This document shows, one piece after another, positions 10,109 to 50,934 of a stretch of DNA of 64,000 bases. How positions within the stretch are numbered: position 1 is the stretch's first letter; the number at the start of each line of letters is the position of its first letter. A program made the position numbers and the translations under genes. This stretch comes from Macrostomum lignano (taxonomy: Eukaryota): positions 62,001-126,000 of the forward strand of contig NIVC01001868.1 in NCBI GenBank assembly GCA_002269645.1, given 5' to 3'. The notes under the pieces were generated by a model, which did no database searches, had not been told where the DNA came from, and saw only the letters and a list, made by a program, of their open reading frames with translations.

Positions 10109-10607
10109 GATGATAATCGGATAAATGAAGTCATTACTTTGTATTTGCATTTCATACTACTTAAATACGAAAGAAATGATGCGCAGCAGTAGTAGCATAA
10201 GTTCATGCTATGATTTTTTATTTCAAGTTGACATCTGTTATGCTCTTTTTGTTAATAATAATATTCAATCTGCGAGCTATAGATTGTTTTCAAAGCATTC
10301 AAAGGTGTTTAGTATTACTAATTGATTGACATTTTTGTGCCTGCGTTGTTCCCATCGGATCTGTTCAACTTGTTTGCCTTATTCTGTTAGGGCTTTGTGT
10401 TTAGCTTTTTACGTATAATTTGAATTTTACGCTTTTAAACTACGACGTACATAATCCTTTTATGTTTGTTTGCCATTTTGGTAACCAACCCATCCCCAGT
10501 TTGTTGGTGTAAAACTTTTTATGAGTACTAAACAGGATTAAAGTGAAAATGGTTTGTATTCAGTTGTATTGACTTCTTTGCTTTCTCATTTGTTTTTAGA
10601 CCCTGTA

Positions 10608-30065: not shown

Positions 30066-31048
30066 GAGCCTGTCGACGACTCATGAAGATCTTTGATCTC
30101 ATCTTATGAGCCTGCCTACTCATGAAGAGCTTTGATCTCATCTCATGAGCCTGCCTACTCATGAAGAGCTTTGATCTCATCTCATGAGCCTGCCTACTCA
30201 TGAAGAGCTTTGATCTCATCTCATGAGCCTTCCTACTCATGAAGATCTTTGATCCCATCTCATGAGCCTGCCTACTCATGAAGAGCTTTGATCTCATCTC
30301 ATGAGCCTGCCTACTCATGAAGATCTTTGATCTCATCTCATGAGCCTGCCTACTCATGAAGATCTTTGATCTCATCTCATGAGCCTGCCTACTCATGAAG
30401 ATCTTTGATCTCATCTCATGAGCCTGCCTACTCATGAAGATCTTTGATCTCATCTCATGAGCCTGCCTACTCATGAAGATCTTTGATCTCATCTCATGAG
30501 CCTGCCTACTCATGAAGAGCTTTGATCTCATCTCATGAGCCTGCCTACTCATGAAGATCTTTGATCTCATCTCATGAGCCTGCCTACTCATGAAGAGCTT
30601 TGATCTCATCTTATGAGCCTGCCTACTCATGAAGATCTTGGAGTCAGAACGCAGAGCTTGTGAACTTTGAACTTGTCATTAGGCTTTGAGCTTATTTGCA
30701 AGGTTAACCTTTCGAACCCCGCTTTAGGAATTTAAAGATTGCAGTCTCCATAAACCATTAAAAAGACACAAAGGCGCGTGCCTGAACATTATTTGTTAAC
30801 ACTTATCTAACACATGAAAGCATATATTTGAATGTAGGAATCTTAAAATTCATTCCAATTTGGTACGGGAATTGAAGGCGGCGCATGACAGGCTTGAAAT
30901 GGATAGATGAATTCTCTGAACAAAAAGATGTTGAGTAACAAAAATACTGTTTGACCTGGATGGGATCTGCGGGATAGACTCGAGATAGACCTCTACAATG
31001 AGATCAAATTTTCTACTTCAAATGCTGAAAAAAAATATCTGCGACCAA
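30066..31048. repeat. Direct-repeat copy 1: 33-bp array (~17 copies) plus ~410 bp unique segment
   Basis: 30640-31048 matches 33656-34059 with a few substitutions and indels; both are preceded by the CTCATGAAGAGCTTTGATCTCATCTCATGAGCCTGCCTA-type array. Confidence 0.93.
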
Positions 31049-32213
31049 CGGCACTCGAGCGGTGATCCCCGCATCCCTGAGGGAGAAGACGCTGCAGCTG
31101 GCACACTTCGGACACCTCGGCGTGAGCAGAATGAAGCAGCACTGTCGGGACGCCGTCTGGTGGCCGCAAATCGACCAGCACATTGAGGAGTTCGTGCGGC
31201 ACTGTGAGGCCTGTCTGCTAAGCGAGAAGAATTTCAAGCCATCCAAGACGGTTCTGACCCCGACAAAGTGGCCGACGCGTCCATGGGAGGAGCTTCAGCT
31301 AGACATCTTTGGGGAGCTGCACTCGGCTCCGAACTCCTGCCGCTTCATCCTGGTGCTGTACGACTTGCACTCAAAGTGGCCGGAGGCTGCCTGCATGTCA
31401 ACCATCACAAGCGCTGATGTCATCGACGCCTTGACAACGTGGTTTAGTCGTTGGGGGCTGCCGAAGAGTATCAACACAGATGGAGGGCCTCAGTTCGTGT
31501 CCGGTGATTTCGAGGATTTTCTCCGGCGCTGTGGCATCCAGCATCGGCAGTCGCCGCACTACCACCCTCAGGGCAACGCGGCGGTGGAGCGTTTCAACCG
31601 GTTTCTCAAGGACGGCCTCAAGACGCACTTGGAGGAGGGCTATGACTTTAAGGACGCGGTGAAGGCACTGCTGTGGTCGTACAGAGCCACCCCGCATGCA
31701 CTGACTGGAGTTTCGCCGGCGGAGCTGATGACAGGCCGGAAGATCAGCACTCCCCTGACAGCCCTACAGCCAAGGACGGCAGCGCGGCACAGACTGGCGG
31801 CCGGCATCAAGCGGAAACAGCAGCGAGTTTTCAACCAGCTCAACTCGACCAGGAGACCCCCGCCGACTTTCATGGTCGGCGACTGGGTGCGGGTGAAGCG
31901 GCCGTTCGCCCGGGGCAAGCTAAGCAGCCGCCTGTCCGAGCCTCGTGAGATCTCCCGGATCGCGAGCGCCACCACCGTCATCCTCAATGATGGCTCCCGC
32001 TGGCACGTCGACAATTGTGTTCGAGTGCCGCGGCCCGCCGGAGCGCTGCCACACTGGCCCGCGACGGCTTCCAGCGCGGCGGCGATTCCGGCGGAGACGG
32101 CGGCGGAGGCGGCAGAGCCAGCGCGGCCGCAGCAGACAGCCCAGACTGCGGTTCGAGGGAGCACGAGGACGCGAGCGCCTCCACAGTGGTACGGGGAAAT
32201 TGTGACGCATTAA
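31049..32213 (+). mobile_element. Gypsy/Ty3 LTR-retrotransposon fragment: integrase (K02A2.6-like), 5'-truncated
   Basis: HHCC zinc motif (AHFGHLG...CEAC) and DDE core (QLDIFG, INTDGGPQF, GNAAVERFNR), followed by YRATPH..TG.SPAELM.GR. No RT or RNase H upstream; the frame is intact. Confidence 0.93.
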
Positions 32214-32418
32214 CTGATTTATTAGTGACTGCTAACTGACTTTCTCACGAACGATGTGCATTTGAAGCCAAATTAGTTGTTTTCAGACTAATATTGCGAT
32301 TTAATGCTCAGTGAAATACTCAGTGTGATGATCTACTTTTATTCCTTCGATGCTCAGTCATGCGCTTTTATTCCTTGTTCAATATTTCGACGAATTCGGT
32401 TTTCGCGATTCCACTAAT

Positions 32419-32603
32419 CGGAAGGGAAGGTGAATGTTGTGTTGCTACTCAATGTGTGTGTGTAGTTGTGTGTACGTTCGTTGTACATCTGTTAGCTATC
32501 GATCGCATTACAATATATGATATATAAGTGAGAGCGCGTTGAGTTTGAGAGCTTGAGAGTTTCGCCTACAAACTTGCAGACTGGCTGGCTTATTCATTAT
32601 ACA
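32419..32603 (+). mobile_element. Putative polypurine tract and short 3' LTR of the Gypsy fragment
   Basis: CGGAAGGGAAGG (32419-32430) is followed by TGTTGTG at 32435, TATATAAG at 32521 and ...TATACA at 32603 abutting the 33-bp array. Boundaries are inferred. Confidence 0.55.
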
Positions 32604-32605
32604 AA

Positions 32606-34059
32606 ACTCATCTCATGAGCCTGCCTACTCATGAAGATCTTTGATCCCATCTCATGAGCCTGCCTACTCATGAAGATCTTTGATCCCATCTCATGAGCCT
32701 GCCTACTCATGAAGAGCTTTGATCCCATCTCATGAGCCTGCCTACTCATGAAGATCTTTGATCCCATCTCATGAGCCTGCCTACTCATGAAGAGCTTTGA
32801 TCCCATCTCATGAGCCTGCCTACTCATGAAGAGCTTTGATCTCATCTCATGAGCCTGCCTACTCATGAAGATCTTTGATCCCATCTCATGAGCCTGCCTA
32901 CTCATGAAGAGCTTTGATCTCATCTCATGAGCCTGCCTACTCATGAAGAGCTTTGATCTCATCTCATGAGCCTGCCTACTCATGAAGATCTTTGATCTCA
33001 TCTCATGAGCCTGCCTACTCATGAAGAGCTTTGATCCCATCTCATGAGCCTGCCTACTCATGAAGAGCTTTGATCCCATCTCATGAGCCTGCCTACTCAT
33101 GAAGAGCTTTGATCTCATCTCATGAGCCTGCCTACTCATGAAGATCTTTGATCCCATCTCATGAGCCTGCCTACTCATGAAGAGCTTTGATCTCATCTCA
33201 TGAGCCTGCCTACTCATGAAGAGCTTTGATCTCATCTCATGAGCCTGCCTACTCATGAAGATCTTTGATCTCATCTCATGAGCCTGCCTACTCATGAAGA
33301 GCTTTGATCCCATCTCATGAGCCTGCCTACTCATGAAGAGCTTTGATCCCATCTCATGAGCCTGCCTACTCATGAAGAGCTTTGATCTCATCTCATGAGC
33401 CTGCCTACTCATGAAGATCTTTGATCTCATCTCATGAGCCTGCCTACTCATGAAGATCTTTGATCTCATCTCATGAGCCTGCCTACTCATGAAGATCTTT
33501 GATCTCATCTCATGAGCCTGCCTACTCATGAAGATCTTTGATCTCATCTCATGAGCCTGCCTACTCATGAAGATCTTTGATCTCATCTCATGAGCCTGCC
33601 TACTCATGAAGAGCTTTGATCCCATCTCATGAGCCTGCCTACTCATGAAGATCTTGGAGTCAGAACGCAGAGCTTGTGAACTTTGAACTTGTCATTAGGC
33701 TTTGAGCTTATTTGCAAGGTTAACCTTTCGAACCCCGCTTTAGGAATTTAAAGATTGCAGTCTCCATAAACCATTAAAAATACACAAAGGCGCGTGCCTG
33801 AACATTATTTGTTAACACTTATCTAACACATGAAAGCATATATTTGAATGTAGGAATCTTAAAATTCATTCCAATTTTGAATTGAAGGCGAAAGCATGAC
33901 AGGCTTGAAATGGATAGATGAATTCTCTGAACAAAAAGATGTTGAGTAACAAAAATACTGTTTGACCTGGATGGGATCTGCGGGATAGACTCGAGATAGA
34001 CCTCTACAATGAGATCAAATTTTCTACTTCAAATGCTGAAAAAAAATATCTGCGACCAA
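32606..34059. repeat. Direct-repeat copy 2: 33-bp array (~32 copies) plus ~405 bp unique segment (ABHD11 3' flank)
   Basis: See copy 1; identity ends at ...ATATCTGCGACCAA. Confidence 0.93.
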
Positions 34060-34153: not shown

Positions 34154-37100
34154 TCAAGAGCCACCGGGGGCTGCCGCAGTCTGAGCGCAGTTTCTCAGAA
34201 ATTGAGTCACCTTTGAGCAGAACTCAACAGGCCGGTCCGCGTGCACCCAGTGGCCGGCGCCCTCCACGAATACAATTTCAGAGCGGGGGAACAGGCGCGG
34301 AATGCTGGCGTCCTTGGGGCTGCAGAGTGGGGGATGTCAGCGATAGCTAATTGTCAGTAAAGCTAATTGTCAGTAATAGCTAATTGTCAGTAATAGCTAA
34401 TTGTCAGTGATAGCTATTCAATAAGTGTCAGCGATAGCTAATTGTCAGTAATAGCTAATTGTCAGTGATAGTTATTGATAGCTAATTGTCAGTGATAGCT
34501 AATTGTCAGCGATAGCTAATTGTCAGTGATAGCTAATTGTCAGCGATAGCTAATTGTCAGTAAAAGCTAATTGTCAGCGATAGCTAATTGTCAGCGATAG
34601 CTAATTGTCAGCTAATTGTCAGCGATAGCTAATTGTCAGCAATAGCTAATTGTCAGCAATAGCTAATTGTCAGCAATAGCTATTTGTCAGCGATAGCTAA
34701 TTGTCAGCGATAGCTAATTGTCAGCGATAGCTAATTGTCAGTGATAGCTAATTGTCAGTAATAGCTAATTGTCAGTAATAACTAATTGTCAGTAAAGCTA
34801 ATTGTCAGTGATAGCTATTCAATAAATGTCAGCGATAGCTAATTGTCAGTAATAGCTAATTGTCAGTAATAGCTAATTGTCAGTGATAGCTATTCAATAA
34901 GTGTCAGCGATAGCTAATTGTCAGTAATAGCTAATTGTCAGTGATAGTTATTGATAGCTAGTTGTCAGTGATAGCTAATTGTCAGCGATAGCTAATTGTC
35001 AGTAAAAGCTAATTGTCAGCGATAGCTAATTGTCAGCAATAGCTAATTGTCAGCAATAGCTAATTGTTAGCGATAGCTAATTGTCAGCGATAGCTAATTG
35101 TCAGCTAATTGTCAGCAATAGCTAATTGTCAGCGATAGCTAATTGTCAGCGATAGCTAATTGTCAGCTAATTGTCAGTAAAAGCTAATTGTCAGCGATAG
35201 CTAATTGTCAGCGATAGCTAATTGTCAGCTAATTGTCAGCAATAGCTAATTGTCAGCAATAGCTAATTGTCAGCGATAGCTAATTGTCAGCTAATTGTCA
35301 GCAATAGCTAATTGTCAGCAATAGCTAATTGTCAGCGATAGCTAATTGTCAGCGATAGCTAATTGTCAGCAATAGCTAATTGTCAGCGATAGCTAATTGT
35401 CAGCGATAGCTAATTGTCAGCGATAGCTAATTGTCAGCTAATTGTCAGCGATAGCTAATTGTCAGCAATAGCTAATTGTCAGCAATAGCTAATTGTTAGC
35501 GATAGCTAATTGTCAGCGATAGCTAATTGTCAGCTAATTGTCAGTAAAAGCTAATTGTCAGCAATAGCTAATTGTCAGCGATAGCTAATTGTCAGCGATA
35601 GCTAATTGTCAGGCTAATTGCCAGCGCTATCTATTAGCAGCACTCACTCAATGTAGGGTGACTTTGAGCCGCCAATAAAAACGGTTGGCCCGTCGTAAAC
35701 AGCCTGGCAGCTGTTCAGCTCGGAGCCCATCAGCTCCTCAATATGAGTCAGCAAAGCTGGCAGATTTATTCGCCACCTGAACTTGCCCGGACAATCTGGC
35801 TCCTCCATCAGGTTGGTGAGTAGGAATTCGCGGATCGCCTTTTCCTGAAATTGATCAGTTTTCAGCAACAGTGTACTTTTGTAATAGTAGAAAAACTAAT
35901 AAGATGACGAAGCATTTGTTATTTATAATACAGTCATAGTGACACTAGCTGTTTACCCAGCTAATACAATGCAAATATCTTACAGGCACTTCGGCGGCCA
36001 GAAACTCAGAATAGGCCTTCTTAGTGCCGGCCAAAGACGGGTCAGGCGGCCGGCTCAGGTCCAGGCTGAGCATCAACTCCATGATGCTGCGAAACCAGCC
36101 CGGCTTGGAGCCGCTGGGCTGCGGCGAGGCGTCCACAACAATTAGCGACCGCACCAGCTGCGGCTGCGGCAGGCAGGAATAGATCTCAGTCTGATATTAG
36201 ATTCCCATCTGATCTCACCCTGACTCTAATCTAATCTCACCCTGACTCTAATCTGATCTCACCCTGACTCCAATCTGATCTCACCCTGACTCCAATCCGA
36301 TCTCACCCTGACTCTAATCTGATCTCACCCTGACTCCAATCTGGTCTCACCCTGACTCCAATCTGATCTCACCCTGACCCTAATCTAATCTCACCCTGAA
36401 TCTAATCTGATCTCACCCTGACCCCAATCTGATCTCAGCTTGAATCCAATCTGATCTCAGCCTGACTCCAATCTAATCTCACCCTGACTCCAATCTGGTC
36501 TCACCCTCCCATTAGATTCTAACTCTTGGCTACTTTTATCTCTCTCCACCCCTGATCCCTGCCTGCCCCTCTCTAACACTCCCACAAGCTCACATGCAGC
36601 AGCGCAGTCCTCATGGCCACCTTGCCGCCCAAGCTGTGGCCGAGCAGGTGCACAGGCGTGGCATCCAGCTGCTGCTCAATAAACTGCCTGACATCGCCAA
36701 CCATAGCCGTCATGCTCATATCCTGATGATGCGGACTATCGCCATGGTTACGCAGATCGGCGCAAATTATTGGCGAATGATTTCTGGCCAGAGATTTGGC
36801 CACAGAGCGCCAGTTGCGGGCCATGCCGAACAGGCCGTGCAGGACGAGCAGCGGCGGCTGCGCGGCCAGGCGCGGGTTGGAGACTGCGGTGTGGGCCAGG
36901 CGCACACTGGGGGGGGGGGGGTGGCAGGCGGGTTGGAGACTGCGGTGTGGGCCAGGCGCACACTGGGGGGTGGCAGGCGGGTTGGAGACTGCGGTGTGGG
37001 CCGGGCGCACACTGGGGGGTGGCAGGCGGGTTGGAGACTGCGGTGTGGGCCAGGCGCACACTGGGGAGGGGGTGGCAGGCGGGTTGGAGACTGCGGTGTG

Positions 37101-39842
37101 GGCCGGGCGCACACTGGGGGTGGCAGGCGGGTTGGAGACTGCGGTGTGGGCCGGGCGCACACTGGGGGTGGCAGGCGGGTTGGAGACTGCGGTGTGGGCC
37201 GGGCGCACACTGGGGGGGGGTGGCAGGCGGGTTGGAGACTGCGGTGTGGGCCGGGAACACACTGGGGGGTGGCAGGCGGGTTGGAGACTGCGGTGTGGGC
37301 CAGGCGCACACTGGGGAGGGGGTGGCAGGCGGGTTGGAGACTGCGGTGTGGGCCGGGCGCACACTGGGGGGTGGCAGGCGGGTTGGAGACTGCGGTGTGG
37401 GCCAGGCGCACACTGGGGGGGGGGTGGCAGGCGGGTTGGAGACTGCGGTGTGGGCCGGGCGCACACTGGGGGTGGCAGGCGGGTTGGAGACTGCGGTGTG
37501 GGCCGGGCGCACACTGGGGGGGGTGGCAGGCGGGTTGGAGACTGCGGTGTGGGCCGGGAACACACTGGGGGTGGCAGGCGGGTTGGAGACTGCGGTGTGG
37601 GCCAGGCGCACACTGGGGAGGGGTGGCAGGCGGGTTGGAGACTGCGGTGTGGGCCGGGCGCACACTGGGGGGGGGTGGCAGGCGGGTTGGAGACTGCGGT
37701 GTGGGCCAGGCGCACACTGGGGGTGGCAGGCGGGTTGGAGACTGCGGTGTGGGCCGGGCGCACACTGGGGGGGGTGGCAGGCGGGTTGGAGACTGCGGTG
37801 TGGGCCAGGCGCACACTGGGGGTGGCAGGCGGGTTGGAGACTGCGGTGTGGGCCAGGCGCACACTGGGGGTGGCAGGCGGGTTGGAGACTGCGGTGTGGG
37901 CCGGGCGCACACTGGGGGGGGGGTGGCAGGCGGGTTGGAGACTGCGGTGTGGGCCGGGCGCACACTGGGGGGTGGCAGGCGGGTTGGAGACTGCGGTGTG
38001 GGCCAGGCGCACACTGGGGGTGGCAGGCGGGTTGGAGACTGCGGTGTGGGCCGGGCGCACACTGGGGGGGGTGCAGGCGGGTTGGAGACTGCGGTGTGGG
38101 CCGGGCGCACACTGGGGAGGGGGTGGCAGGCGGGTTGGAGACTGCGGTGTGGGCCAGGCGCACACTGGGGGGGGTGGCAGGCGGGTTGGAGACTGCGGTG
38201 TGGGCCAGGCGCACACTGGGAGGGGGTGGCAGGCGGGTTGGAGACTGCGGTGTGGGCCGGGCGCACACTGGGGGGTGGCAGGCGGGTTGGAGACTGCGGT
38301 ATGGGCCAGACGCACACTGGGGGGGGGGTGGCAGGCGGGTTGGAGACTGCGGTGTGGGCCAGGCGCACACTGGGGAGGGGGTGGCAGGCGGGTTGGAGAC
38401 TGCGGTGTGGGCCAGGCGCACACTGGGGGGGGGTGGCAGGCGGGTTGGAGACTGCGGTGTGGGCCAGGCGCACACTGGGGAGGGGTGGCAGGCGGGTTGG
38501 AGACTGCGGTGTGGGCCGGGCGCACACTGGGAGGAGGTGGCAGGCGGGTTGGAGACTGCGGTGTGGGCCAGGCGCACACTGGGGGGGGTGGCAGGCGGGT
38601 TGGAGACTGCGGTGTGGGCCGGGCGCACACTGGGGAGGGGGTGGCAGGCGGGTTGGAGACTGCGGTGTGGGCCAGGCGCACACTGGGGGGTGGCAGGCGG
38701 GTTGGAGACTGCGGTGTGGGCCGGGCGCACACTGGGGGGTGGCAGGCGGGTTGGAGACTGGGGGTGGGCCAGGCGCACACTGGGAGGGGGTGGCAGGTGG
38801 GTTGGAGACTGCGGTGTGGGCCGGGCGCACACTGGGGGGTGGCAGGCGGGTTGGAGACTGCGGTGTGGGCCAGGCGCACACTGGGGGGTGGCAGGCGGGT
38901 TGGAGACTGCGGTGTGGGCCGGGCGCACACTGGGGTGGCAGGCGGGTTGGAGACTGCGGTGTGGGCCGGGCGCACACTGGGGGGGGTGGCAGGCGGGTTG
39001 GAGACTGCGGTGTGGGCCAGGCGCACACTGGGGGTGGCAGGCGGGTTGGAGACTGCGGTGTGGGCCGGGCGCACACTGGGGGGGGGTGGCAGGCGGGTTG
39101 GAGACTGCGGTGTGGGCCAGGCGCACACTGGGGGTGGCAGGCGGGTTGGAGACTGCGGTGTGGGCCGGGCGCACACTGGGGGGGGGTGGCAGGCGGTTGG
39201 AGACTGCGGTGTGGGCCGGGCGCACACTGGGGAGGGGGTGGCAGGCGGGTTGGAGACTGCGGTGTGGGCCAGGCGCACACTGGGGGGGGGTGGCAGGCGG
39301 GTTGGAGACTGCGGTGTGGGCCAGGCGCACACTGGGGGGTGGCAGGCGGGTTGGAGACTGCGGTGTGGGCCGGGCGCACACTGGGGGTGGCAGGCGGGTT
39401 GGAGACTGCGGTGTGGGCCGGGCGCACACTGGGGGGTGGCAGGCGGGTTGGAGACTGCGGTGTGGGCCAGGCGCACACTGGGGAGACTGCGGTGTGGGCC
39501 GGGCGCACACTGGGGGTGGCAGGCGGGTTGGAGACTGCGGTGTGGGCCAGGCGCACACTGGGAGGGGGTGGCAGGCGGGTTGGAGACTGCTGTGTGGGCC
39601 GGGCGCACACTGGGGGGTGGCAGGCGGGTTGGAGACTGCTGTGTGGGCCAGGCGCACACTGGGGGGGGGGTGGCAGGCGGGTTGGAGACTGCGGTGTGGG
39701 CCGGGCGCACACTGGGGGTGGCAGGCGGGTTGGAGACTGCGGTGTGGGCCAGGCGCACACTGGGGGGGGGGTGGCAGGCGGGTTGGAGACTGCGGTGTGG
39801 GCCGGGCGCTGATTAACTCATAAAGAAACACACACACCTCAT
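34154..39842 (-). CDS. ABHD11: Alpha/beta hydrolase ABHD11-like, 5 exons, 286 aa
   Basis: Exons 39842-39838 (ATGAG|gt), 36906-36594, 36163-35984, 35844-35648 and 34319-34154, all in phase. Motifs PPLLVLHGLFG..RNW, ADLRNHGDSPH, LLGHSLGGK (nucleophile), LIVVDASP, FLLTNL, WRINL, PTVFIGGSKS and AGHWVHADRP. The 5-nt first coding exon is inferred. Confidence 0.92.
34337..35625. repeat. 17-bp minisatellite in ABHD11 intron 4 (GATAGCTAATTGTCAGC)
   Basis: About 75 copies with 12-bp deletion variants. Confidence 0.96.
36190..36510. repeat. 22-bp minisatellite in ABHD11 intron 2 (CTCACCCTGACTCCAATCTGAT)
   Basis: About 14 copies. Confidence 0.92.
36880..39808 (-). repeat. ~49-56-bp minisatellite in ABHD11 intron 1, made of the 3' splice site plus the first 35 nt of exon 2
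   Basis: Sense-strand unit ctgcca(c)n ag|TGTGCGCC(T/C)GGCCCACACCGCAGTCTCCAACCCGC; roughly 55-60 copies with a variable C run. Confidence 0.95.
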
Positions 39843-40024
39843 AGTCGGTAGCGGTCACAATGCAGAGTAGTTAAAAAATCACCTCAGCCAAGCAGGGTGA
39901 AGCGGCTGACAAACAAGTTCACTCGGAGAAAATTTCAGCACTGAAAATTTAGTGGTTGTAAAATGGATTTACTGACCATTTTAAGTGAATGCAGCGTTTT
40001 ATTGGAAACATGTGGGCTAGCGTG

Positions 40025-42602: not shown

Positions 42603-45600
42603 TCAGACGTTGCTGCGGGTCATCGAGTACAGGCAGTCCTGCGGAGTAGGCGACGAATCCAGCAGGTTGTCGATGGCGGTGAGCCACTGCTGGCAGGCGG
42701 CGGCGGAGTCGGCGGAGAACACATAGTCCCTGTCTGGCGTGCTCAGAGTGAACACGTGCTGTCCGGCCGGTTTGACTTTCTTCCTGAAGCCGGGCGGGGG
42801 CCCAGCCGAGATGCTGTAAGCCGGCCGCTGTCCCAGCCAGATCTCGCCTCTCGGCCGGGGCTCCATGAAGCCGGCGCAGTAGAACAGCGACCGGCGCAGC
42901 AGGAAGCACCAGCGGCGCTGCCAGGCCTCCGTCTGGTTTGGCCCGGTCTTGGCCAGCCAGCCGCACACGGCGAAGTCGTAAGTTAGCGGCAGTCGGAGCA
43001 GCTCCTCGGGAGACAGCAGCGACACCCGATAGCGATAGTACTTGCAGCCGCGGATGGCGTTGTACCAGCTGATGATCTCCTGCTCCTGTTCATGGTACAC
43101 GTACAGGCTGCGAGTGCGGCCCTGGTCCGGGTACAGGATCTGCATCAGGTTGGGGTGGCTGCCCTCCACGGCGACGCCAACCATCGTCACGTTCAGCTGA
43201 CAGTGACGGGAGAAAATTTAGCAGCAAATTGAAATTGAAATCTGTGCCGCTGGTGTGCAAAACACAGAGGGGCCCACAAATACGCCATGAAATCACGGAC
43301 AGGTGATCAAGGACACGAAGGATTATTTGAAGACAGGCAGTCAAGACACACGAGGACAGGTCAGCAGACACTGAAGGACAGGTCAGCAAAGACACTCAAG
43401 GACAGGTCAGCAGACACTGAAGGACAGGTCAGCAAAGACACACAAGGACAGGTCAGCAGACACTGAAGGACAGGTTAGCAAAGACACACAAGGACAGGTC
43501 AGCAAAAACACATGGACAGGTCAGCAAAGACACACGAGGACAGGTCAGCAGACACTGAAGGACAGGTCAGCAAAGACACACAAGGACAGGTCAGCAGACA
43601 CTGAAGGACAGGTCAGCAAAGACACACAAGGACAGGTCAGCAAAAACACATGGACAGGTCAGCAAAGACACACAAGGACAGGTCAGCAATGACACACAAG
43701 GACAGGTCAGCAAAGACACACAAGGATAGGTCAGCAAAGACACACAAGGACAGGTCAGCAGACACTGAAGGACAGGTCGGCAATGACACACAAGGACAGG
43801 TCGGCAATGACACACAAGGACAGGTCGGCAATGACACACAAGGACAGGTCGGCAATGACACACAAGGACAGGTCAGCAATGACACACAAGGACAGGTCAG
43901 CAAAGACACACAAGGACAGGTCAGCAAAGACACACAAGGACAGGTCGGCAATGACACACAAGGACAGGTCGGCAATGACACACAAGGACAGGTCAGCAAT
44001 GACACACAAGGACAGGTCAGCAAAGACACACAAGGACAGGTCAGCAAAGACACACAAGGACAGGTCGGCAATGACACACAAGGACAGGTCAGCAAAAACA
44101 CATGGACAGGTCAGCAATGACACACAAGGACAGGTCAGCAAAGACACACAAGGACAGGTCAGCAGACACTGAAGGACAGGTCGGCAAAGACACACAAGGA
44201 CAGGTCGGCAATGACACACAAGGACAGGTCGGCAATGACACACAAGGACAGGTCGGCAATGACACACAAGGACAGGTCGGCAATGACACACAAGGACAGG
44301 TCAGCAATGACACACAAGGACAGGTCAGCAAAGACACACAAGGACAGGTCGGCAATGACACACAAGGACAGGTCGGCAATGACACACAAGGACAGGTCGG
44401 CAATGACACACAAGGACAGGTCAGCAAAAACACATGGACAGGTCAGCAATGACACACAAGGACAGGTCGGCAATGACACACAAGGACAGGTCGGCAATGA
44501 CACACAAGGACAGGTCGGCAAAGACACACAAGGACAGGTCAGCAATGACACACAAGGACAGGTCAGCAAAGACACACAAGGACAGGTCAGCAAAGACACA
44601 CAAGGACAGGTCGGCAATGACACACAAGGACAGGTCGGCAATGACACACAAGGACAGGTCAGCAAAAACACATGGACAGGTCAGCAATGACACACAAGGA
44701 CAGGTCGGCAATGACACACAAGGACAGGTCGGCAATGACACACAAGGACAGGTCGGCAAAGACACACAAGGACAGGTCAGCCATGACACACAAGGACAGG
44801 TCAGCAAAGACACACAAGGACAGGTCAGCAAAGACACACAAGGACAGGTCAGCAAAAACACATGGACAGGTCAGCAATGACACACAAGGACAGGTCAGCA
44901 AAGACACACAAGGACAGGTCAGCAGACACTGAAGGACAGGTCGGCAAAGACACACAAGGACAGGTCGGCAATGACACACAAGGACAGGTCGGCAATGACA
45001 CACAAAGACAGGTCAGCAAAAACACATGGACAGGTCAGCAATGACACACAAGGACAGGTCAGCAAAGACACACAAGGACAGGTCAGCAGACACTGAAGGA
45101 CAGGTCGGCAAAGACACACAAGGACAGGTCGGCAATGACACACAAGGACAGGTCAGCAGACACTGAAGGACAGGTCGGCAATGACACACAAGGACAGGTC
45201 AGCAGACACTGAAGGACAGGTCGGCAATGACACACAAGGACAGGTCAGCAAAGACACACAAGGACAGGTCGGCAAAGACACACAAGGACAGGTCAGCAAA
45301 GACACACAAGGACAGGTCAGCAAAGACACACAAGGACAGGTCGGCAAAGACACACAAGGACAGGTCGGCAATGACACACAAGGACAGGTCAGCAATGACA
45401 CACGGACCAACAAAGCCCATCCCACAGTGGCCCAACTCACCCTATCAATGGGAATGGTGGCCTTGACCTCCCTAGCGCTGCCGTCCTTCACAAAGTACCG
45501 CAGATAATTATCCCTCTCGGACAGTTCAAAAATTCTGGAAAAGTACTTGTCCGAATCTTTCGACCGTTTCCACAGTTGGCCCTCCTTGGTGAAGCCGCCG

Positions 45601-49497: not shown

Positions 49498-50772
49498 TCA
49501 GATCTTCGTGAGCAGCCGGCAGGAGGACGAAGCGTCAACCTTGCTGCTGTCCTCCTCGGCGTTCACAGACTTGACAACGTTGTCCACAACGTGCATAGAG
49601 AACCGGCGACAGCGGACGCTGCCAAGAACGGCTGTCAGATCGATGTCCATGCCCAGGGCTTTGGCGAACTCTGCCCGACTGTCGGCCAGCATCAGCACCT
49701 GGCAGTTTGGAATTGATTTAGGAAATTTTAAAACTATCGTTTCTACTTGCAGTAGCGTACAAAGCCTTTCACCTAACGTTAATCACTCAATGCTGGATTT
49801 TTAATAACAAATTGGTGCAGAATAAGGAATAATACTCGTATTCTCGAAGAGAAAGTCTCGAGCCACGACCTCTGGTTCGATTCCTTCCTCAGGCACAGTG
49901 TACATGCCTGACGATTAGAAAGTTAGGGCCGCTGTACGAACTGTGTCTGCGTACAGCAGGAGTCGGCAGACTTTTTTTACCTGAAGCGACCAGATAAAGA
50001 ATCAGGATCATTGCTGCAGGCCGGATGAGACAGGAAAGCAGAGGAGAGCAGATAGAAAAGGAAAGAAGAGATGAAAGATGACAGAAGAGAGGAGAGATGA
50101 GTGTTATGATGAGAGAAGATGAGAGGAGAGAAAATACAGGAGAGCAAAACAGAGGAGATCAGAGCAGAGAGGAGAGGAAGGGAGAGGAGGAGAGGGTAGG
50201 AGAGAAGAGGAGAGAGGAGAGGAAAAGGAGGAGAAGAGAGGAGAGAAGAGGAGAGAGGAGATGAGAGGAGAGAGGAGAGGAAAGTAAAGGAGAAAAGCGT
50301 AGAGAACTGAGAAGGGAAGCTTACCCTGAGGGAGCCGGGTTGATATTCTAAAGTTTCAAAGGACCTGAGGGCTGGACAGAGGCTTCGCGGTCCAAAGTTT
50401 GCCGACTTCTAGCTTACAGTATTGGCGCGCTTGCATGTGCTGAGGAGTATTGTGCTGAGGAATATTATCATGAGTCAAGCAACTAACCTTGTCACCAGAT
50501 CCCAGGGCGCCAGCCCAGGCGGCCATCACGAACGGATCGTTAACAGCCACGCAGATCACCAGGTCGACACCTTTGGCTTTGAGCTTGTCAAAGTCGGCTA
50601 CAAAGCCGGGCAGGTGGCTGCTGTGGCAGGTCGGCGTGAAAGCTCCGGGGACGCCGACAATGACAACCGACTTGCCGGCGCAGAGCTCGTCAATGCGGAC
50701 CGGCTTGTTAGGAGCGCCGTCGAACAGAGTGACCTGCGGCAGTCGGTCGCCTGGCTTCACTTGGCTGGTCAT
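49498..50772 (-). CDS. PRDX5: Peroxiredoxin-5-like (atypical/type II Prx), 2 exons, 161 aa
   Basis: Exons 50772-50488 and 49698-49498 (AAG|gttagt ... ctgccag|GTG). Motifs VPGAFTPTC..SHLPGF, CVAVNDPFVM.AW, MLAD and RRFSM. Confidence 0.96.
49810..49980 (+). mobile_element. Possible tRNA-derived SINE or Pol III unit in the PRDX5 intron
   Basis: Exact B-box GGTTCGATTCC at 49874-49884, A-box-like TGGTGCAGAATAAGG ~60 nt upstream and a T7 run at ~49972-49978. No cloverleaf was evident. Confidence 0.35.
50035..50325. repeat. Polypurine (GA-rich) low-complexity tract in the PRDX5 intron
   Basis: Almost only A and G on the + strand (GAGGA/GAGAG). Confidence 0.9.
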
Positions 50773-50934
50773 GGCTGTTTAGCTTAGCTGAAGTGGCAGA
50801 AATTTGCACATCAATTAGGTAGTTAAGTTTGCATAGCAGCCTGTTAGCCCCGGAGACACGCAGTCATGCCCAAGCGCAAGCTATTTGTACAACAGGCAAC
50901 AAATCAATGACGCGAGAGTCAGCTGTTCGGTTTC

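Follow-up and report, generated by a model that had tools for sequence, protein, structure and literature searches.

We analyzed a 64,000-nt stretch of the Macrostomum lignano genome (assembly Mlig_3_7, GCA_002269645.1, contig NIVC01001868.1, positions 62,001 to 126,000; here called the window) that carries, on its minus strand, a predicted gene for an ABHD11-type hydrolase. Intron 1 of this gene is a tandem array of its own 3' splice site together with the start of the following exon, as had been claimed in an original prediction made from the letters alone, and 58 copies of the acceptor could be parsed. The array is probably a young, hypervariable intronic minisatellite (variable number tandem repeat, VNTR) that was seeded over the junction of intron 1 and exon 2 and is removed by splicing to its last acceptor.

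The array runs head to tail for ~2.9 kb and consists of the 58 acceptor copies and a partial leading copy (in all sequences given here, a slash next to AG or in front of GT marks a splice junction):

36872-39808, minus strand: minisatellite array of ~59 copies; each unit joins 35 nt of the exon-2 start (TGTGCGCCYGGCCCACACCGCAGTCTCCAACCCGC) to 12-21 nt of the intron 3' end (CTGCCA, C-run, AG)

The unit reads TGTGCGCC(T/C)GGCCCACACCGCAGTCTCCAACCCGC followed by CTGCCA, a run of C, and AG. The array begins past ...CTATGAG/GTGTGTGTGTTTCTTTATGAGTTAATCAG, and its partial leading copy (39808-39760) stands directly after ..ttaatcag. Acceptor sites were parsed on the minus strand as AG/TGTG[CT][GT][CT]C; the exon-start positions of the 58 sites extend from 39759 to 36906, and CAG/TGTG is kept in every unit (58/58). 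Tandem Repeats Finder (TRF) reported a period of 49 nt with 51.8 copies and a further 6.5, as well as a 101-nt higher-order period (96% matches) at the upstream end of the array; T and C variant units partly alternate. Further unit variants carry ACAG, TGTGTT, or a T-interrupted C-run. The 26-nt core GGCCCACACCGCAGTCTCCAACCCGC occurred 57 times at ≤3 mismatches (52 exact), always on the minus strand and always within the array, with 0 occurrences in shuffled sequence. No array unit was found outside the array in the window or in the other loci fetched, and a dispersed repeat family was rejected because the unit is confined to the array.

Unit lengths were 48 nt (14 units), 49 nt (12 units), 52 nt (11 units), 53 nt (10 units), and 51 nt (6 units), with single units of 32, 47, 50, and 56 nt. 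The 32-nt unit is truncated, and all remaining units measure 47-56 nt. Nearly all of this variation is held in the C-run, and unit length is not a multiple of three in 37 of 57 cases. The gene strand of the array contains neither a stop codon nor an ATG, and the plus strand contains only one TGA and one ATG; the array is essentially open in all six frames, its frames being stop-free because the repeated unit is itself stop-free. Only the copy at 36906 runs on into the hydrolase exon (...NPRLAAQPPLLVLHGLFG): at the end of its 35-nt exon part it reads ...CCAACCCGC/GCCTGGCC, and the other 57 copies, which we call decoys, read ...CCAACCCGC/CTGCCAC. Dependence of unit length on the C-run, three stop-free minus-strand frames, and a single copy that enters the hydrolase had all been part of the original prediction, and each was borne out. 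This is the longest array of the window, and with its head-to-tail 47-56-nt units, ~59 copies, interspersed variants, and higher-order period it has the features of a minisatellite. An Rfam search of the window gave no match to a known RNA family.

The exons and the intron that frame the array are as follows:

39883-39902, minus strand: first 20 nt of the 5'-partial PAA63138.1 coding sequence (CTTCACCCTGCTTGGCTGAG, encoding LHPAWL and the start of an S codon), ending at the donor CTGAG/GTGATT
39838-39842, minus strand: ATGAG mini-exon (start codon and 2 nt), followed by the donor GTGTGT; start of the coding sequence in the GenBank models of two paralogous loci, L001 and L002
36907-39837, minus strand: intron 1 counted from the ATGAG donor, 2931 nt (36907-39882 from the donor of the window-locus GenBank model)
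36594-36906, minus strand: exon 2, 313 nt, VRLAHTAVSNPRLAAQPPLLVLHGLFG...GHSLGG...ALLH, with the donor CAT/GTGAGC at its end
35984-36163, minus strand: exon 3, 180 nt
35648-35844, minus strand: exon 4, 197 nt
34154-34319, minus strand: last exon through the TGA stop (...GAGHWVHADRP...APGGS)

By its sequence, the host gene is an ABHD11/YbfF-type alpha/beta hydrolase. Joining the four downstream exons at GT/AG sites gave a complete alpha/beta hydrolase of 286 aa in which the motifs HGLFG (HG oxyanion), GHSLGG (GxSxG nucleophile), and GAGHWVH (C-terminal His) are all present. The closest database relatives of the exon-2 product were M. lignano entries named ABHD11, and the hydrolase was 38-46% identical to named metazoan ABHD11 proteins and bacterial esterases. 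The NCBIfam esterase profile PRK10673 was matched over positions 9-253 of 255 (E = 3.5e-35) at 121 versus 399 bits, below the equivalog cut-off. The gene is already annotated in Mlig_3_7, together with two paralogous copies. Locus L003 (NIVC01001868.1) is 100% identical to window positions 49902-24154 over 25,749 nt, and PAA63138.1, a 5'-partial protein of 291 aa that begins LHPAWLSVRLAH, is therefore the deposited model of the window gene. PAA55941.1 (BOX15_Mlig010009g2; 286 aa), which starts MSVRLAH, is 99% identical to the spliced window protein, and its 90% cluster also holds PAA74225.1 (Mlig007475g3; 286 aa) and PAA63138.1 (Mlig021496g2). Our literature search found no paper that pairs Macrostomum with ABHD11.

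At all three loci, the deposited models enter exon 2 at the last acceptor of the array. Mlig_3_7 gene models derive from genome-guided RNA-seq assembly via StringTie/TACO, TBONE, and TransDecoder. PAA63138.1, PAA55941.1, and PAA74225.1 could be rebuilt residue for residue only by splicing into the last acceptor of each array, which skips 57 decoys in the window, 7 at L001, and 5 at L002. Because all three RNA-seq-guided models join this acceptor, the decoys are skipped in the assembled major transcript, as the original prediction had expected of the spliceosome. The coding sequences at L001 and L002 consist of ATGAG joined to the last array acceptor. The window-locus coding sequence starts at 39902, leaves exon 1 at CTGAG/GTGATT (after 39883), and enters at the last acceptor, 36906 (LHPAWL/SVRLAH); the ATGAG therefore stays inside the intron. 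Thus, two exon-1 donors lie 45 nt apart, CTGAG/GTGATT (39883/39882) and ATGAG/GTGTGT (39838/39837), and both are in frame with 36906. The first, used at the window locus, comes with no start codon and a 5'-partial model; the second, used at the paralogous loci, supplies the start MS. The proposal of an ATGAG exon 1 (39842-39838 in the window) consequently stands for the paralogs, where MS/VRLAH matches PAA55941.1 and PAA74225.1, and does not stand for the window-locus model PAA63138.1. A 5' exon other than 39842-39838 had been named in the original prediction as a finding that would count against it, and the donor after 39883 touches this point.

The number of copies differs widely among the three paralogous loci of Mlig_3_7 compared here: 58 acceptors in NIVC01001868.1 (the window), 8 in NIVC01002686.1 (L001), and 6 in NIVC01000967.1 (L002). 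Since the array occupies the same place in all three, the founding duplication predates the split of the copies. Unique flanking sequence is ~97.5% identical to the window at L001 and about 93-96% identical at L002, the most diverged locus. The L002 array (10157-10468) is built of T-type units only, each 48 or 51 nt long, so every decoy there is in frame; this array is a 147-nt higher-order duplication with 100% identity, and because that duplication is recent, the multiples of three may be coincidence. It is preceded by ~135 nt of unique intron that is missing from the other two loci. Within the window array, 52 of 59 cores are identical, with fewer differences than between the paralogs, which argues that it was recently expanded or homogenized. 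The expansion to 58 copies, or contraction elsewhere, is recent.

All other minisatellites shared by the three loci vary in copy number as much as the intron 1 array does:

Intron 1, 49-nt array: ~59 copies in the window, 8.6 at L001, 6.4 at L002
36203-36507, minus strand, intron 2, 22-nt array: 13.9 copies in the window, 46.6 at L001, 37.9 at L002
34335-35612, minus strand, last intron, 17-nt array: 77 copies in the window, 5.4 at L001, 96.5 at L002
Upstream, 30-35-nt array: 3.8 copies in the window, ~26 at L001, 10.9 at L002
Upstream, 32-nt array: 25.6 copies in the window, 34.6 at L001, 23.6 at L002
Upstream, 31-nt array: 20.5 copies in the window, 21.5 at L001, 14.5 at L002

Tandem repeat makes up 44.5% of the window (TRF); 32 arrays reach 200 bp or more, their periods range from 3 to 46 nt, and a minisatellite is present in three of the four introns of the ABHD11 gene. 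Simple and tandem repeats have been reported to account for 15% of the M. lignano genome and to swell introns and operon spacers (PMC5730564, PMC8629364). The intron 1 array stands out only by the site at which it was seeded and, though striking, seems to be an ordinary outcome of a region in which tandem repeats make up almost half of the sequence. Elsewhere in the window, two arrays of one 39-nt minisatellite lie ~2 kb apart downstream of ABHD11 (30079-30639 and 32607-33655), and a retroelement integrase-like open reading frame of 394 codons (31029-32210, plus strand) is located between them. The stretch from ~31049 to 32606 had no match in the L001 and L002 sequences fetched, which suggests that a transposon inserted into this copy alone.

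The repeat was copied from the exon. Its 35 exon-derived nucleotides encode (S)VRLAHTAVSNP, the conserved first strand of the fold, which follows S-V-x-L-[AS]-[HY] in an alignment of homologues (alignment A1). Counterparts in this alignment are PVKLAYASY in Nasonia, PVELSHHTY in Ptychodera, SVPLSYKLL in a bat, and MSLTLSF or MTLELAY in bacteria, with a nearly invariant Leu. Because this strand is conserved in metazoan and bacterial homologues, the exon is ancestral and the repeat is the derivative. The same alignment shows that the N-terminus of the M. lignano protein coincides with the start of bacterial YbfF-like esterases. ABHD11 of insects, hemichordates, and mammals has 40-55 additional residues at its N-terminus, a mitochondrial presequence, and these are missing from the M. 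lignano protein; localization of the protein may therefore differ, or all models may miss a 5' exon.

We propose that a ~48-nt segment, made up of ~13 nt from the intron end and 35 nt from the exon start, would have been tandemly duplicated before the three gene copies diverged. Later expansion and contraction would have occurred by slippage or unequal exchange, as in other M. lignano minisatellites. The whole array would leave with intron 1, whose donor is that after 39838 or after 39883 and whose acceptor is the one directly joined to the real exon. The last copy would be chosen, through exon definition or a reliance on neighboring exon sequence, because the complete exon body and, after 313 nt, a consensus donor (GTGAG) follow it alone, and the array itself would have little or no function.

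How the decoys are ignored, a question raised in the original prediction, is a legitimate puzzle, and human ABCA7 offers a known mirror-image precedent. Our view of acceptor choice follows from the similarity of the copies. At 57 of the 58 AGs, an exon-derived, branch-like ccaAc motif precedes the AG by 17-26 nt and is followed by the C-tract and CAG. The decoys are identical to the real site over a minimum of 48 nt on its upstream side and 35 nt on its downstream side; discriminating information must therefore lie further downstream. Because every unit is a complete branch-point-like/C-tract/AG module, we infer that the last copy is selected by the downstream exon. Other selectors were considered and rejected. 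The real acceptor of the window has 13 C in its tract versus 4-10 at the decoys, and the real acceptors of L001 and L002 have 6 C and 8 C, respectively; the strongest pyrimidine tract was rejected as the selector since it is not conserved and the longest run at L001 belongs to the first acceptor. Recursive splicing was rejected because the junction reads AG/TGTGCG, and exon 1 joined to TGTGCG regenerates no GT donor. Folding the last 266 nt (36850-37115, minus-strand RNA) gave z = -2.96 versus shuffles, with a diffuse centroid. RNA structure that hides the decoys was rejected on account of this modest stability and because the pairing is equally open to the real copy. Within the predicted fold, UGUGCGCC just 3' of each acceptor can pair with GGCCCACA of a neighboring unit.

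Upstream of intron 1, the context of the gene bears on its 5' end. The upstream ArfGAP-PH proteins were rebuilt and matched exactly at the three loci (Mlig021496g1, Mlig010009g1, and Mlig007475g1), with the ABHD11 genes numbered g2, g2, and g3; from the shared transcriptional-unit prefix, ABHD11 is therefore a downstream gene of an assembled polycistronic unit. M. lignano has operons and a spliced leader (SL) of 35 nt that ends in ATG and is added to 30-39% of genes. Its published trans-acceptor motif is YTNCAG ([T/C]TNCAG), and flatworms are documented to initiate translation at the SL AUG. Two features between the genes are relevant:

39998-40003, minus strand: AATAAA hexamer ~90 nt upstream of the annotated ABHD11 coding sequence start, which may serve the upstream ArfGAP-PH gene as its poly(A) signal
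39906-39943, minus strand: candidate SL acceptors TTTCAG/ (AG 39942-39941, a perfect YTNCAG match) and TTGTCAG/ (AG 39907-39906)

The layout of 39905-40003 looks like an operon junction. At the TTGTCAG/ acceptor, the terminal AUG of the SL is in frame (M-PLHPAWL-SVRLAH), and an SL-supplied start could explain the 5'-partial coding sequence at the window locus; the annotated coding sequence starts 3 nt further in than predicted from this acceptor. Genes for a peroxiredoxin (AhpC-TSA/Redoxin, 50359-50778, minus strand), ArfGAP-PH (42606-43217, minus strand), and ABHD11 (34154-39902, minus strand) have a common order and a common strand in the window, L002, and L003, and a TAF2-like gene lies further along on the strand opposite to these three.

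Appreciable use of the decoys would yield a ladder of isoforms, ~40% of them with in-frame Pro-rich N-terminal extensions and ~60% of them frameshifted targets of nonsense-mediated mRNA decay (NMD), so that array length or C-run slippage would set the output of the gene. We consider this unlikely. Computing the frame of each acceptor, as the original prediction had proposed, placed 24 of 58 in frame from either annotated donor (23 of 57 decoys, 40%), with a longest extension of 951 codons. The other 34 acceptors lead to stops at 36750-36748 or 36769-36767, and because these lie 154-173 nt before the exon-2 donor, the frameshifted transcripts would be NMD candidates by the usual rule. Every decoy also keeps the same intact branch-point-like/C-tract/CAG module as the real site, the deposited annotation would not display such isoforms, and the donor VNTR of human ABCA7 has a one-unit-retention isoform (~2%) and a length that correlates with expression (PMC5954066). 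However, the distal acceptor is used in all three RNA-guided models whether 6, 8, or 58 acceptors are present, the annotated product is unchanged between the paralogs, and the array varies no differently from neutral-looking neighboring arrays. The frame pattern is not conserved either: in-frame decoys number 1 of 7 at L001, 5 of 5 at L002, and 23 of 57 in the window, which argues against selection on this pattern. It is likewise doubtful that orphan acceptors capture exon 1 or the AUG-ending SL in a large fraction of transcripts, such that paralogs with 6, 8, and 58 copies would give differing productive mRNA and minisatellite length would act as a dosage dial. Practically no credence can be given to a translated array, in which exon 1 would be spliced to the first acceptor (a 78-nt intron) and a Pro-rich N-terminal domain of 951 codons would be fused to the hydrolase. 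The first acceptor is in frame (39759-36906 = 2853 nt = 3 x 951), an uninterrupted open reading frame of 1061 codons exists, and one ML2-based UniProt model (P0057) translates ~5 units fused to the upstream gene. Yet the first acceptor would be in frame by chance one time in three, the frame hops among all three unit frames with 37 of 57 units not multiples of three, the same 286-aa protein, free of any units, is the product of the paralogs that have 6-8 acceptor copies, and P0057 is a gene-prediction fusion rather than transcript evidence. The array is not coding because its unit lengths are mostly not multiples of three; with no single conserved frame, a coding tandem repeat (Pro-rich or mucin-like) was rejected, the 48- and 51-nt units of L002 being weak counterevidence.

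The context of trans-splicing offers another reading, in which the array is an outron or the decoys are SL acceptors, so that orphan acceptors receive an SL that could supply the start codon. The ATG-ending SL and its frequency, the initiator role documented in flatworms, and the transcriptional-unit name shared with the upstream ArfGAP-PH gene at all three loci, which indicates a polycistronic precursor, favor this idea, and the SL AUG would be in frame at 14 of 58 acceptors, among them the last but one (36962). It is nevertheless very unlikely, given that joining the SL at 36906, the real acceptor, would put its AUG out of frame, that the array acceptors read CCCCAG and, with no T at position -5, mismatch YTNCAG, and that two cis donors upstream are used in the deposited models. 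An SL AUG at 36906 or at the second AG of the unit (gcAG/TCTCC) was rejected as a start because both are out of frame. The chance that the array is real and its 58-copy length or its C-runs are misassembled is remote. Mlig_3_7 dates from 2017 and was assembled from PacBio, Illumina, and 454 data for a genome that is rich in repeats and partly duplicated, and homopolymer lengths are error-prone; against this, the array is found at three loci with an irregular, locus-specific order of unit variants, its 2.9 kb fits within long-read length, and other arrays are longer at other loci, so there is no one-directional collapse. Our preferred reading, a minisatellite spliced out to the last acceptor, has points against it as well. 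The GenBank set was filtered to remove transcripts overlapping repeat annotations and alternative transcripts with identical coding sequence, and this filter, together with multi-mapping of short reads from decoy junctions, would conceal decoy use whether it is slight or substantial; that the annotation shows no ladder isoforms is therefore no evidence against them. The deposited window-locus model is 5'-partial and lacks a start codon, and the C-run lengths, possibly also the copy number, rest on the 2017 long-read assembly. Finally, exon definition gives no evident reason why the last copy should be preferred to the two or three that precede it.

For the study of how a 3' splice site is chosen, the three loci form a natural experiment. 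A single genome contains nearly identical paralogs that carry 6, 8, and 58 modules and are distinguished by diagnostic single-nucleotide polymorphisms in exon 2 (KSLA/KALA, SMTA/SMAA/SVAA), and public RNA-seq exists. Exclusive distal use, if true, would show cleanly, and in vivo, that continuity with the exon and a donor further down outweigh both the "first AG" advantage and the advantage of being transcribed first. Decoy use, if true, would link minisatellite instability to gene dosage. The tandem-repeat load of M. lignano can thus multiply functional signals, and it can mislead gene prediction, as in UniProt models with an internal-Met start or translated units. Older ML2-based UniProt models of this gene family (P0001, P0053, P0055, P0056, and P0057) are visibly broken by the array: two have their start at an internal Met (MARNW) and are thus missing HGLFG, one joins an upstream PH-domain exon to ~5 translated units and the hydrolase, and others are frameshifted.

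Several known systems share features with this array. Generic M. lignano minisatellites resemble it in unit size, head-to-tail arrangement, strand-asymmetric composition, and large copy-number differences between paralogous loci; unlike them, the array was seeded over an intron-exon junction and so multiplies a functional signal. NAGNAG tandem acceptors lie 3 nt apart and share one branch point. Both they and the array place identical acceptors in cis competition, but the copies of the array are 47-56 nt apart, each has its own branch-like motif, and 58 of them stand in a natural gene. For the duplicated-3'-splice-site minigenes of Reed and Maniatis (1986), the amount of adjacent exon sequence and proximity to it reportedly decide which copy is used, and our reading of the array applies the same logic. 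A recursive splice site, or ratchet point, needs AG/GT to regenerate a donor; such sites and the array copies are alike internal acceptors in a long intron, whereas the array junction is AG/TG. The polymorphic mucin (SmPoMuc) genes of Schistosoma mansoni contain small exons in tandem repeat; these units are genuine in-frame exons, spliced into mRNA for diversity. They too are flatworm genes with a variable 5' tandem repeat that carries splice sites; in M. lignano, by contrast, unit length is not a multiple of three, and the annotated mRNA contains none of the units.

As a precedent, the VNTR in intron 18 of human ABCA7 comes closest; its 25-nt unit starts with the exon-18 donor GT and is present in 12 to ~427 copies, and the array abuts exon 18 (PMC5954066). 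There, the exon-contiguous donor copy is used, the isoform that retains one unit amounts to ~2%, and correlations link VNTR length to reduced expression and to skipping of the following exon (PMC5954066). Both arrays are hypervariable minisatellites at an intron edge whose unit carries the splice site of the adjacent exon, with the exon-contiguous copy normally used and the remainder removed with the intron. The corresponding features were found in M. lignano, where the last unit is continuous with exon 2 and the exon-contiguous copy is used according to three deposited coding sequence models. The two differ in that the ABCA7 array repeats a 5' splice site in a purely intronic unit and has measured effects on splicing and expression, whereas the M. 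lignano unit combines a 3' splice-site module with 35 nt of coding exon and is known here from sequence and gene models. On these features, the M. lignano array is the mirror image of ABCA7, built on the acceptor.

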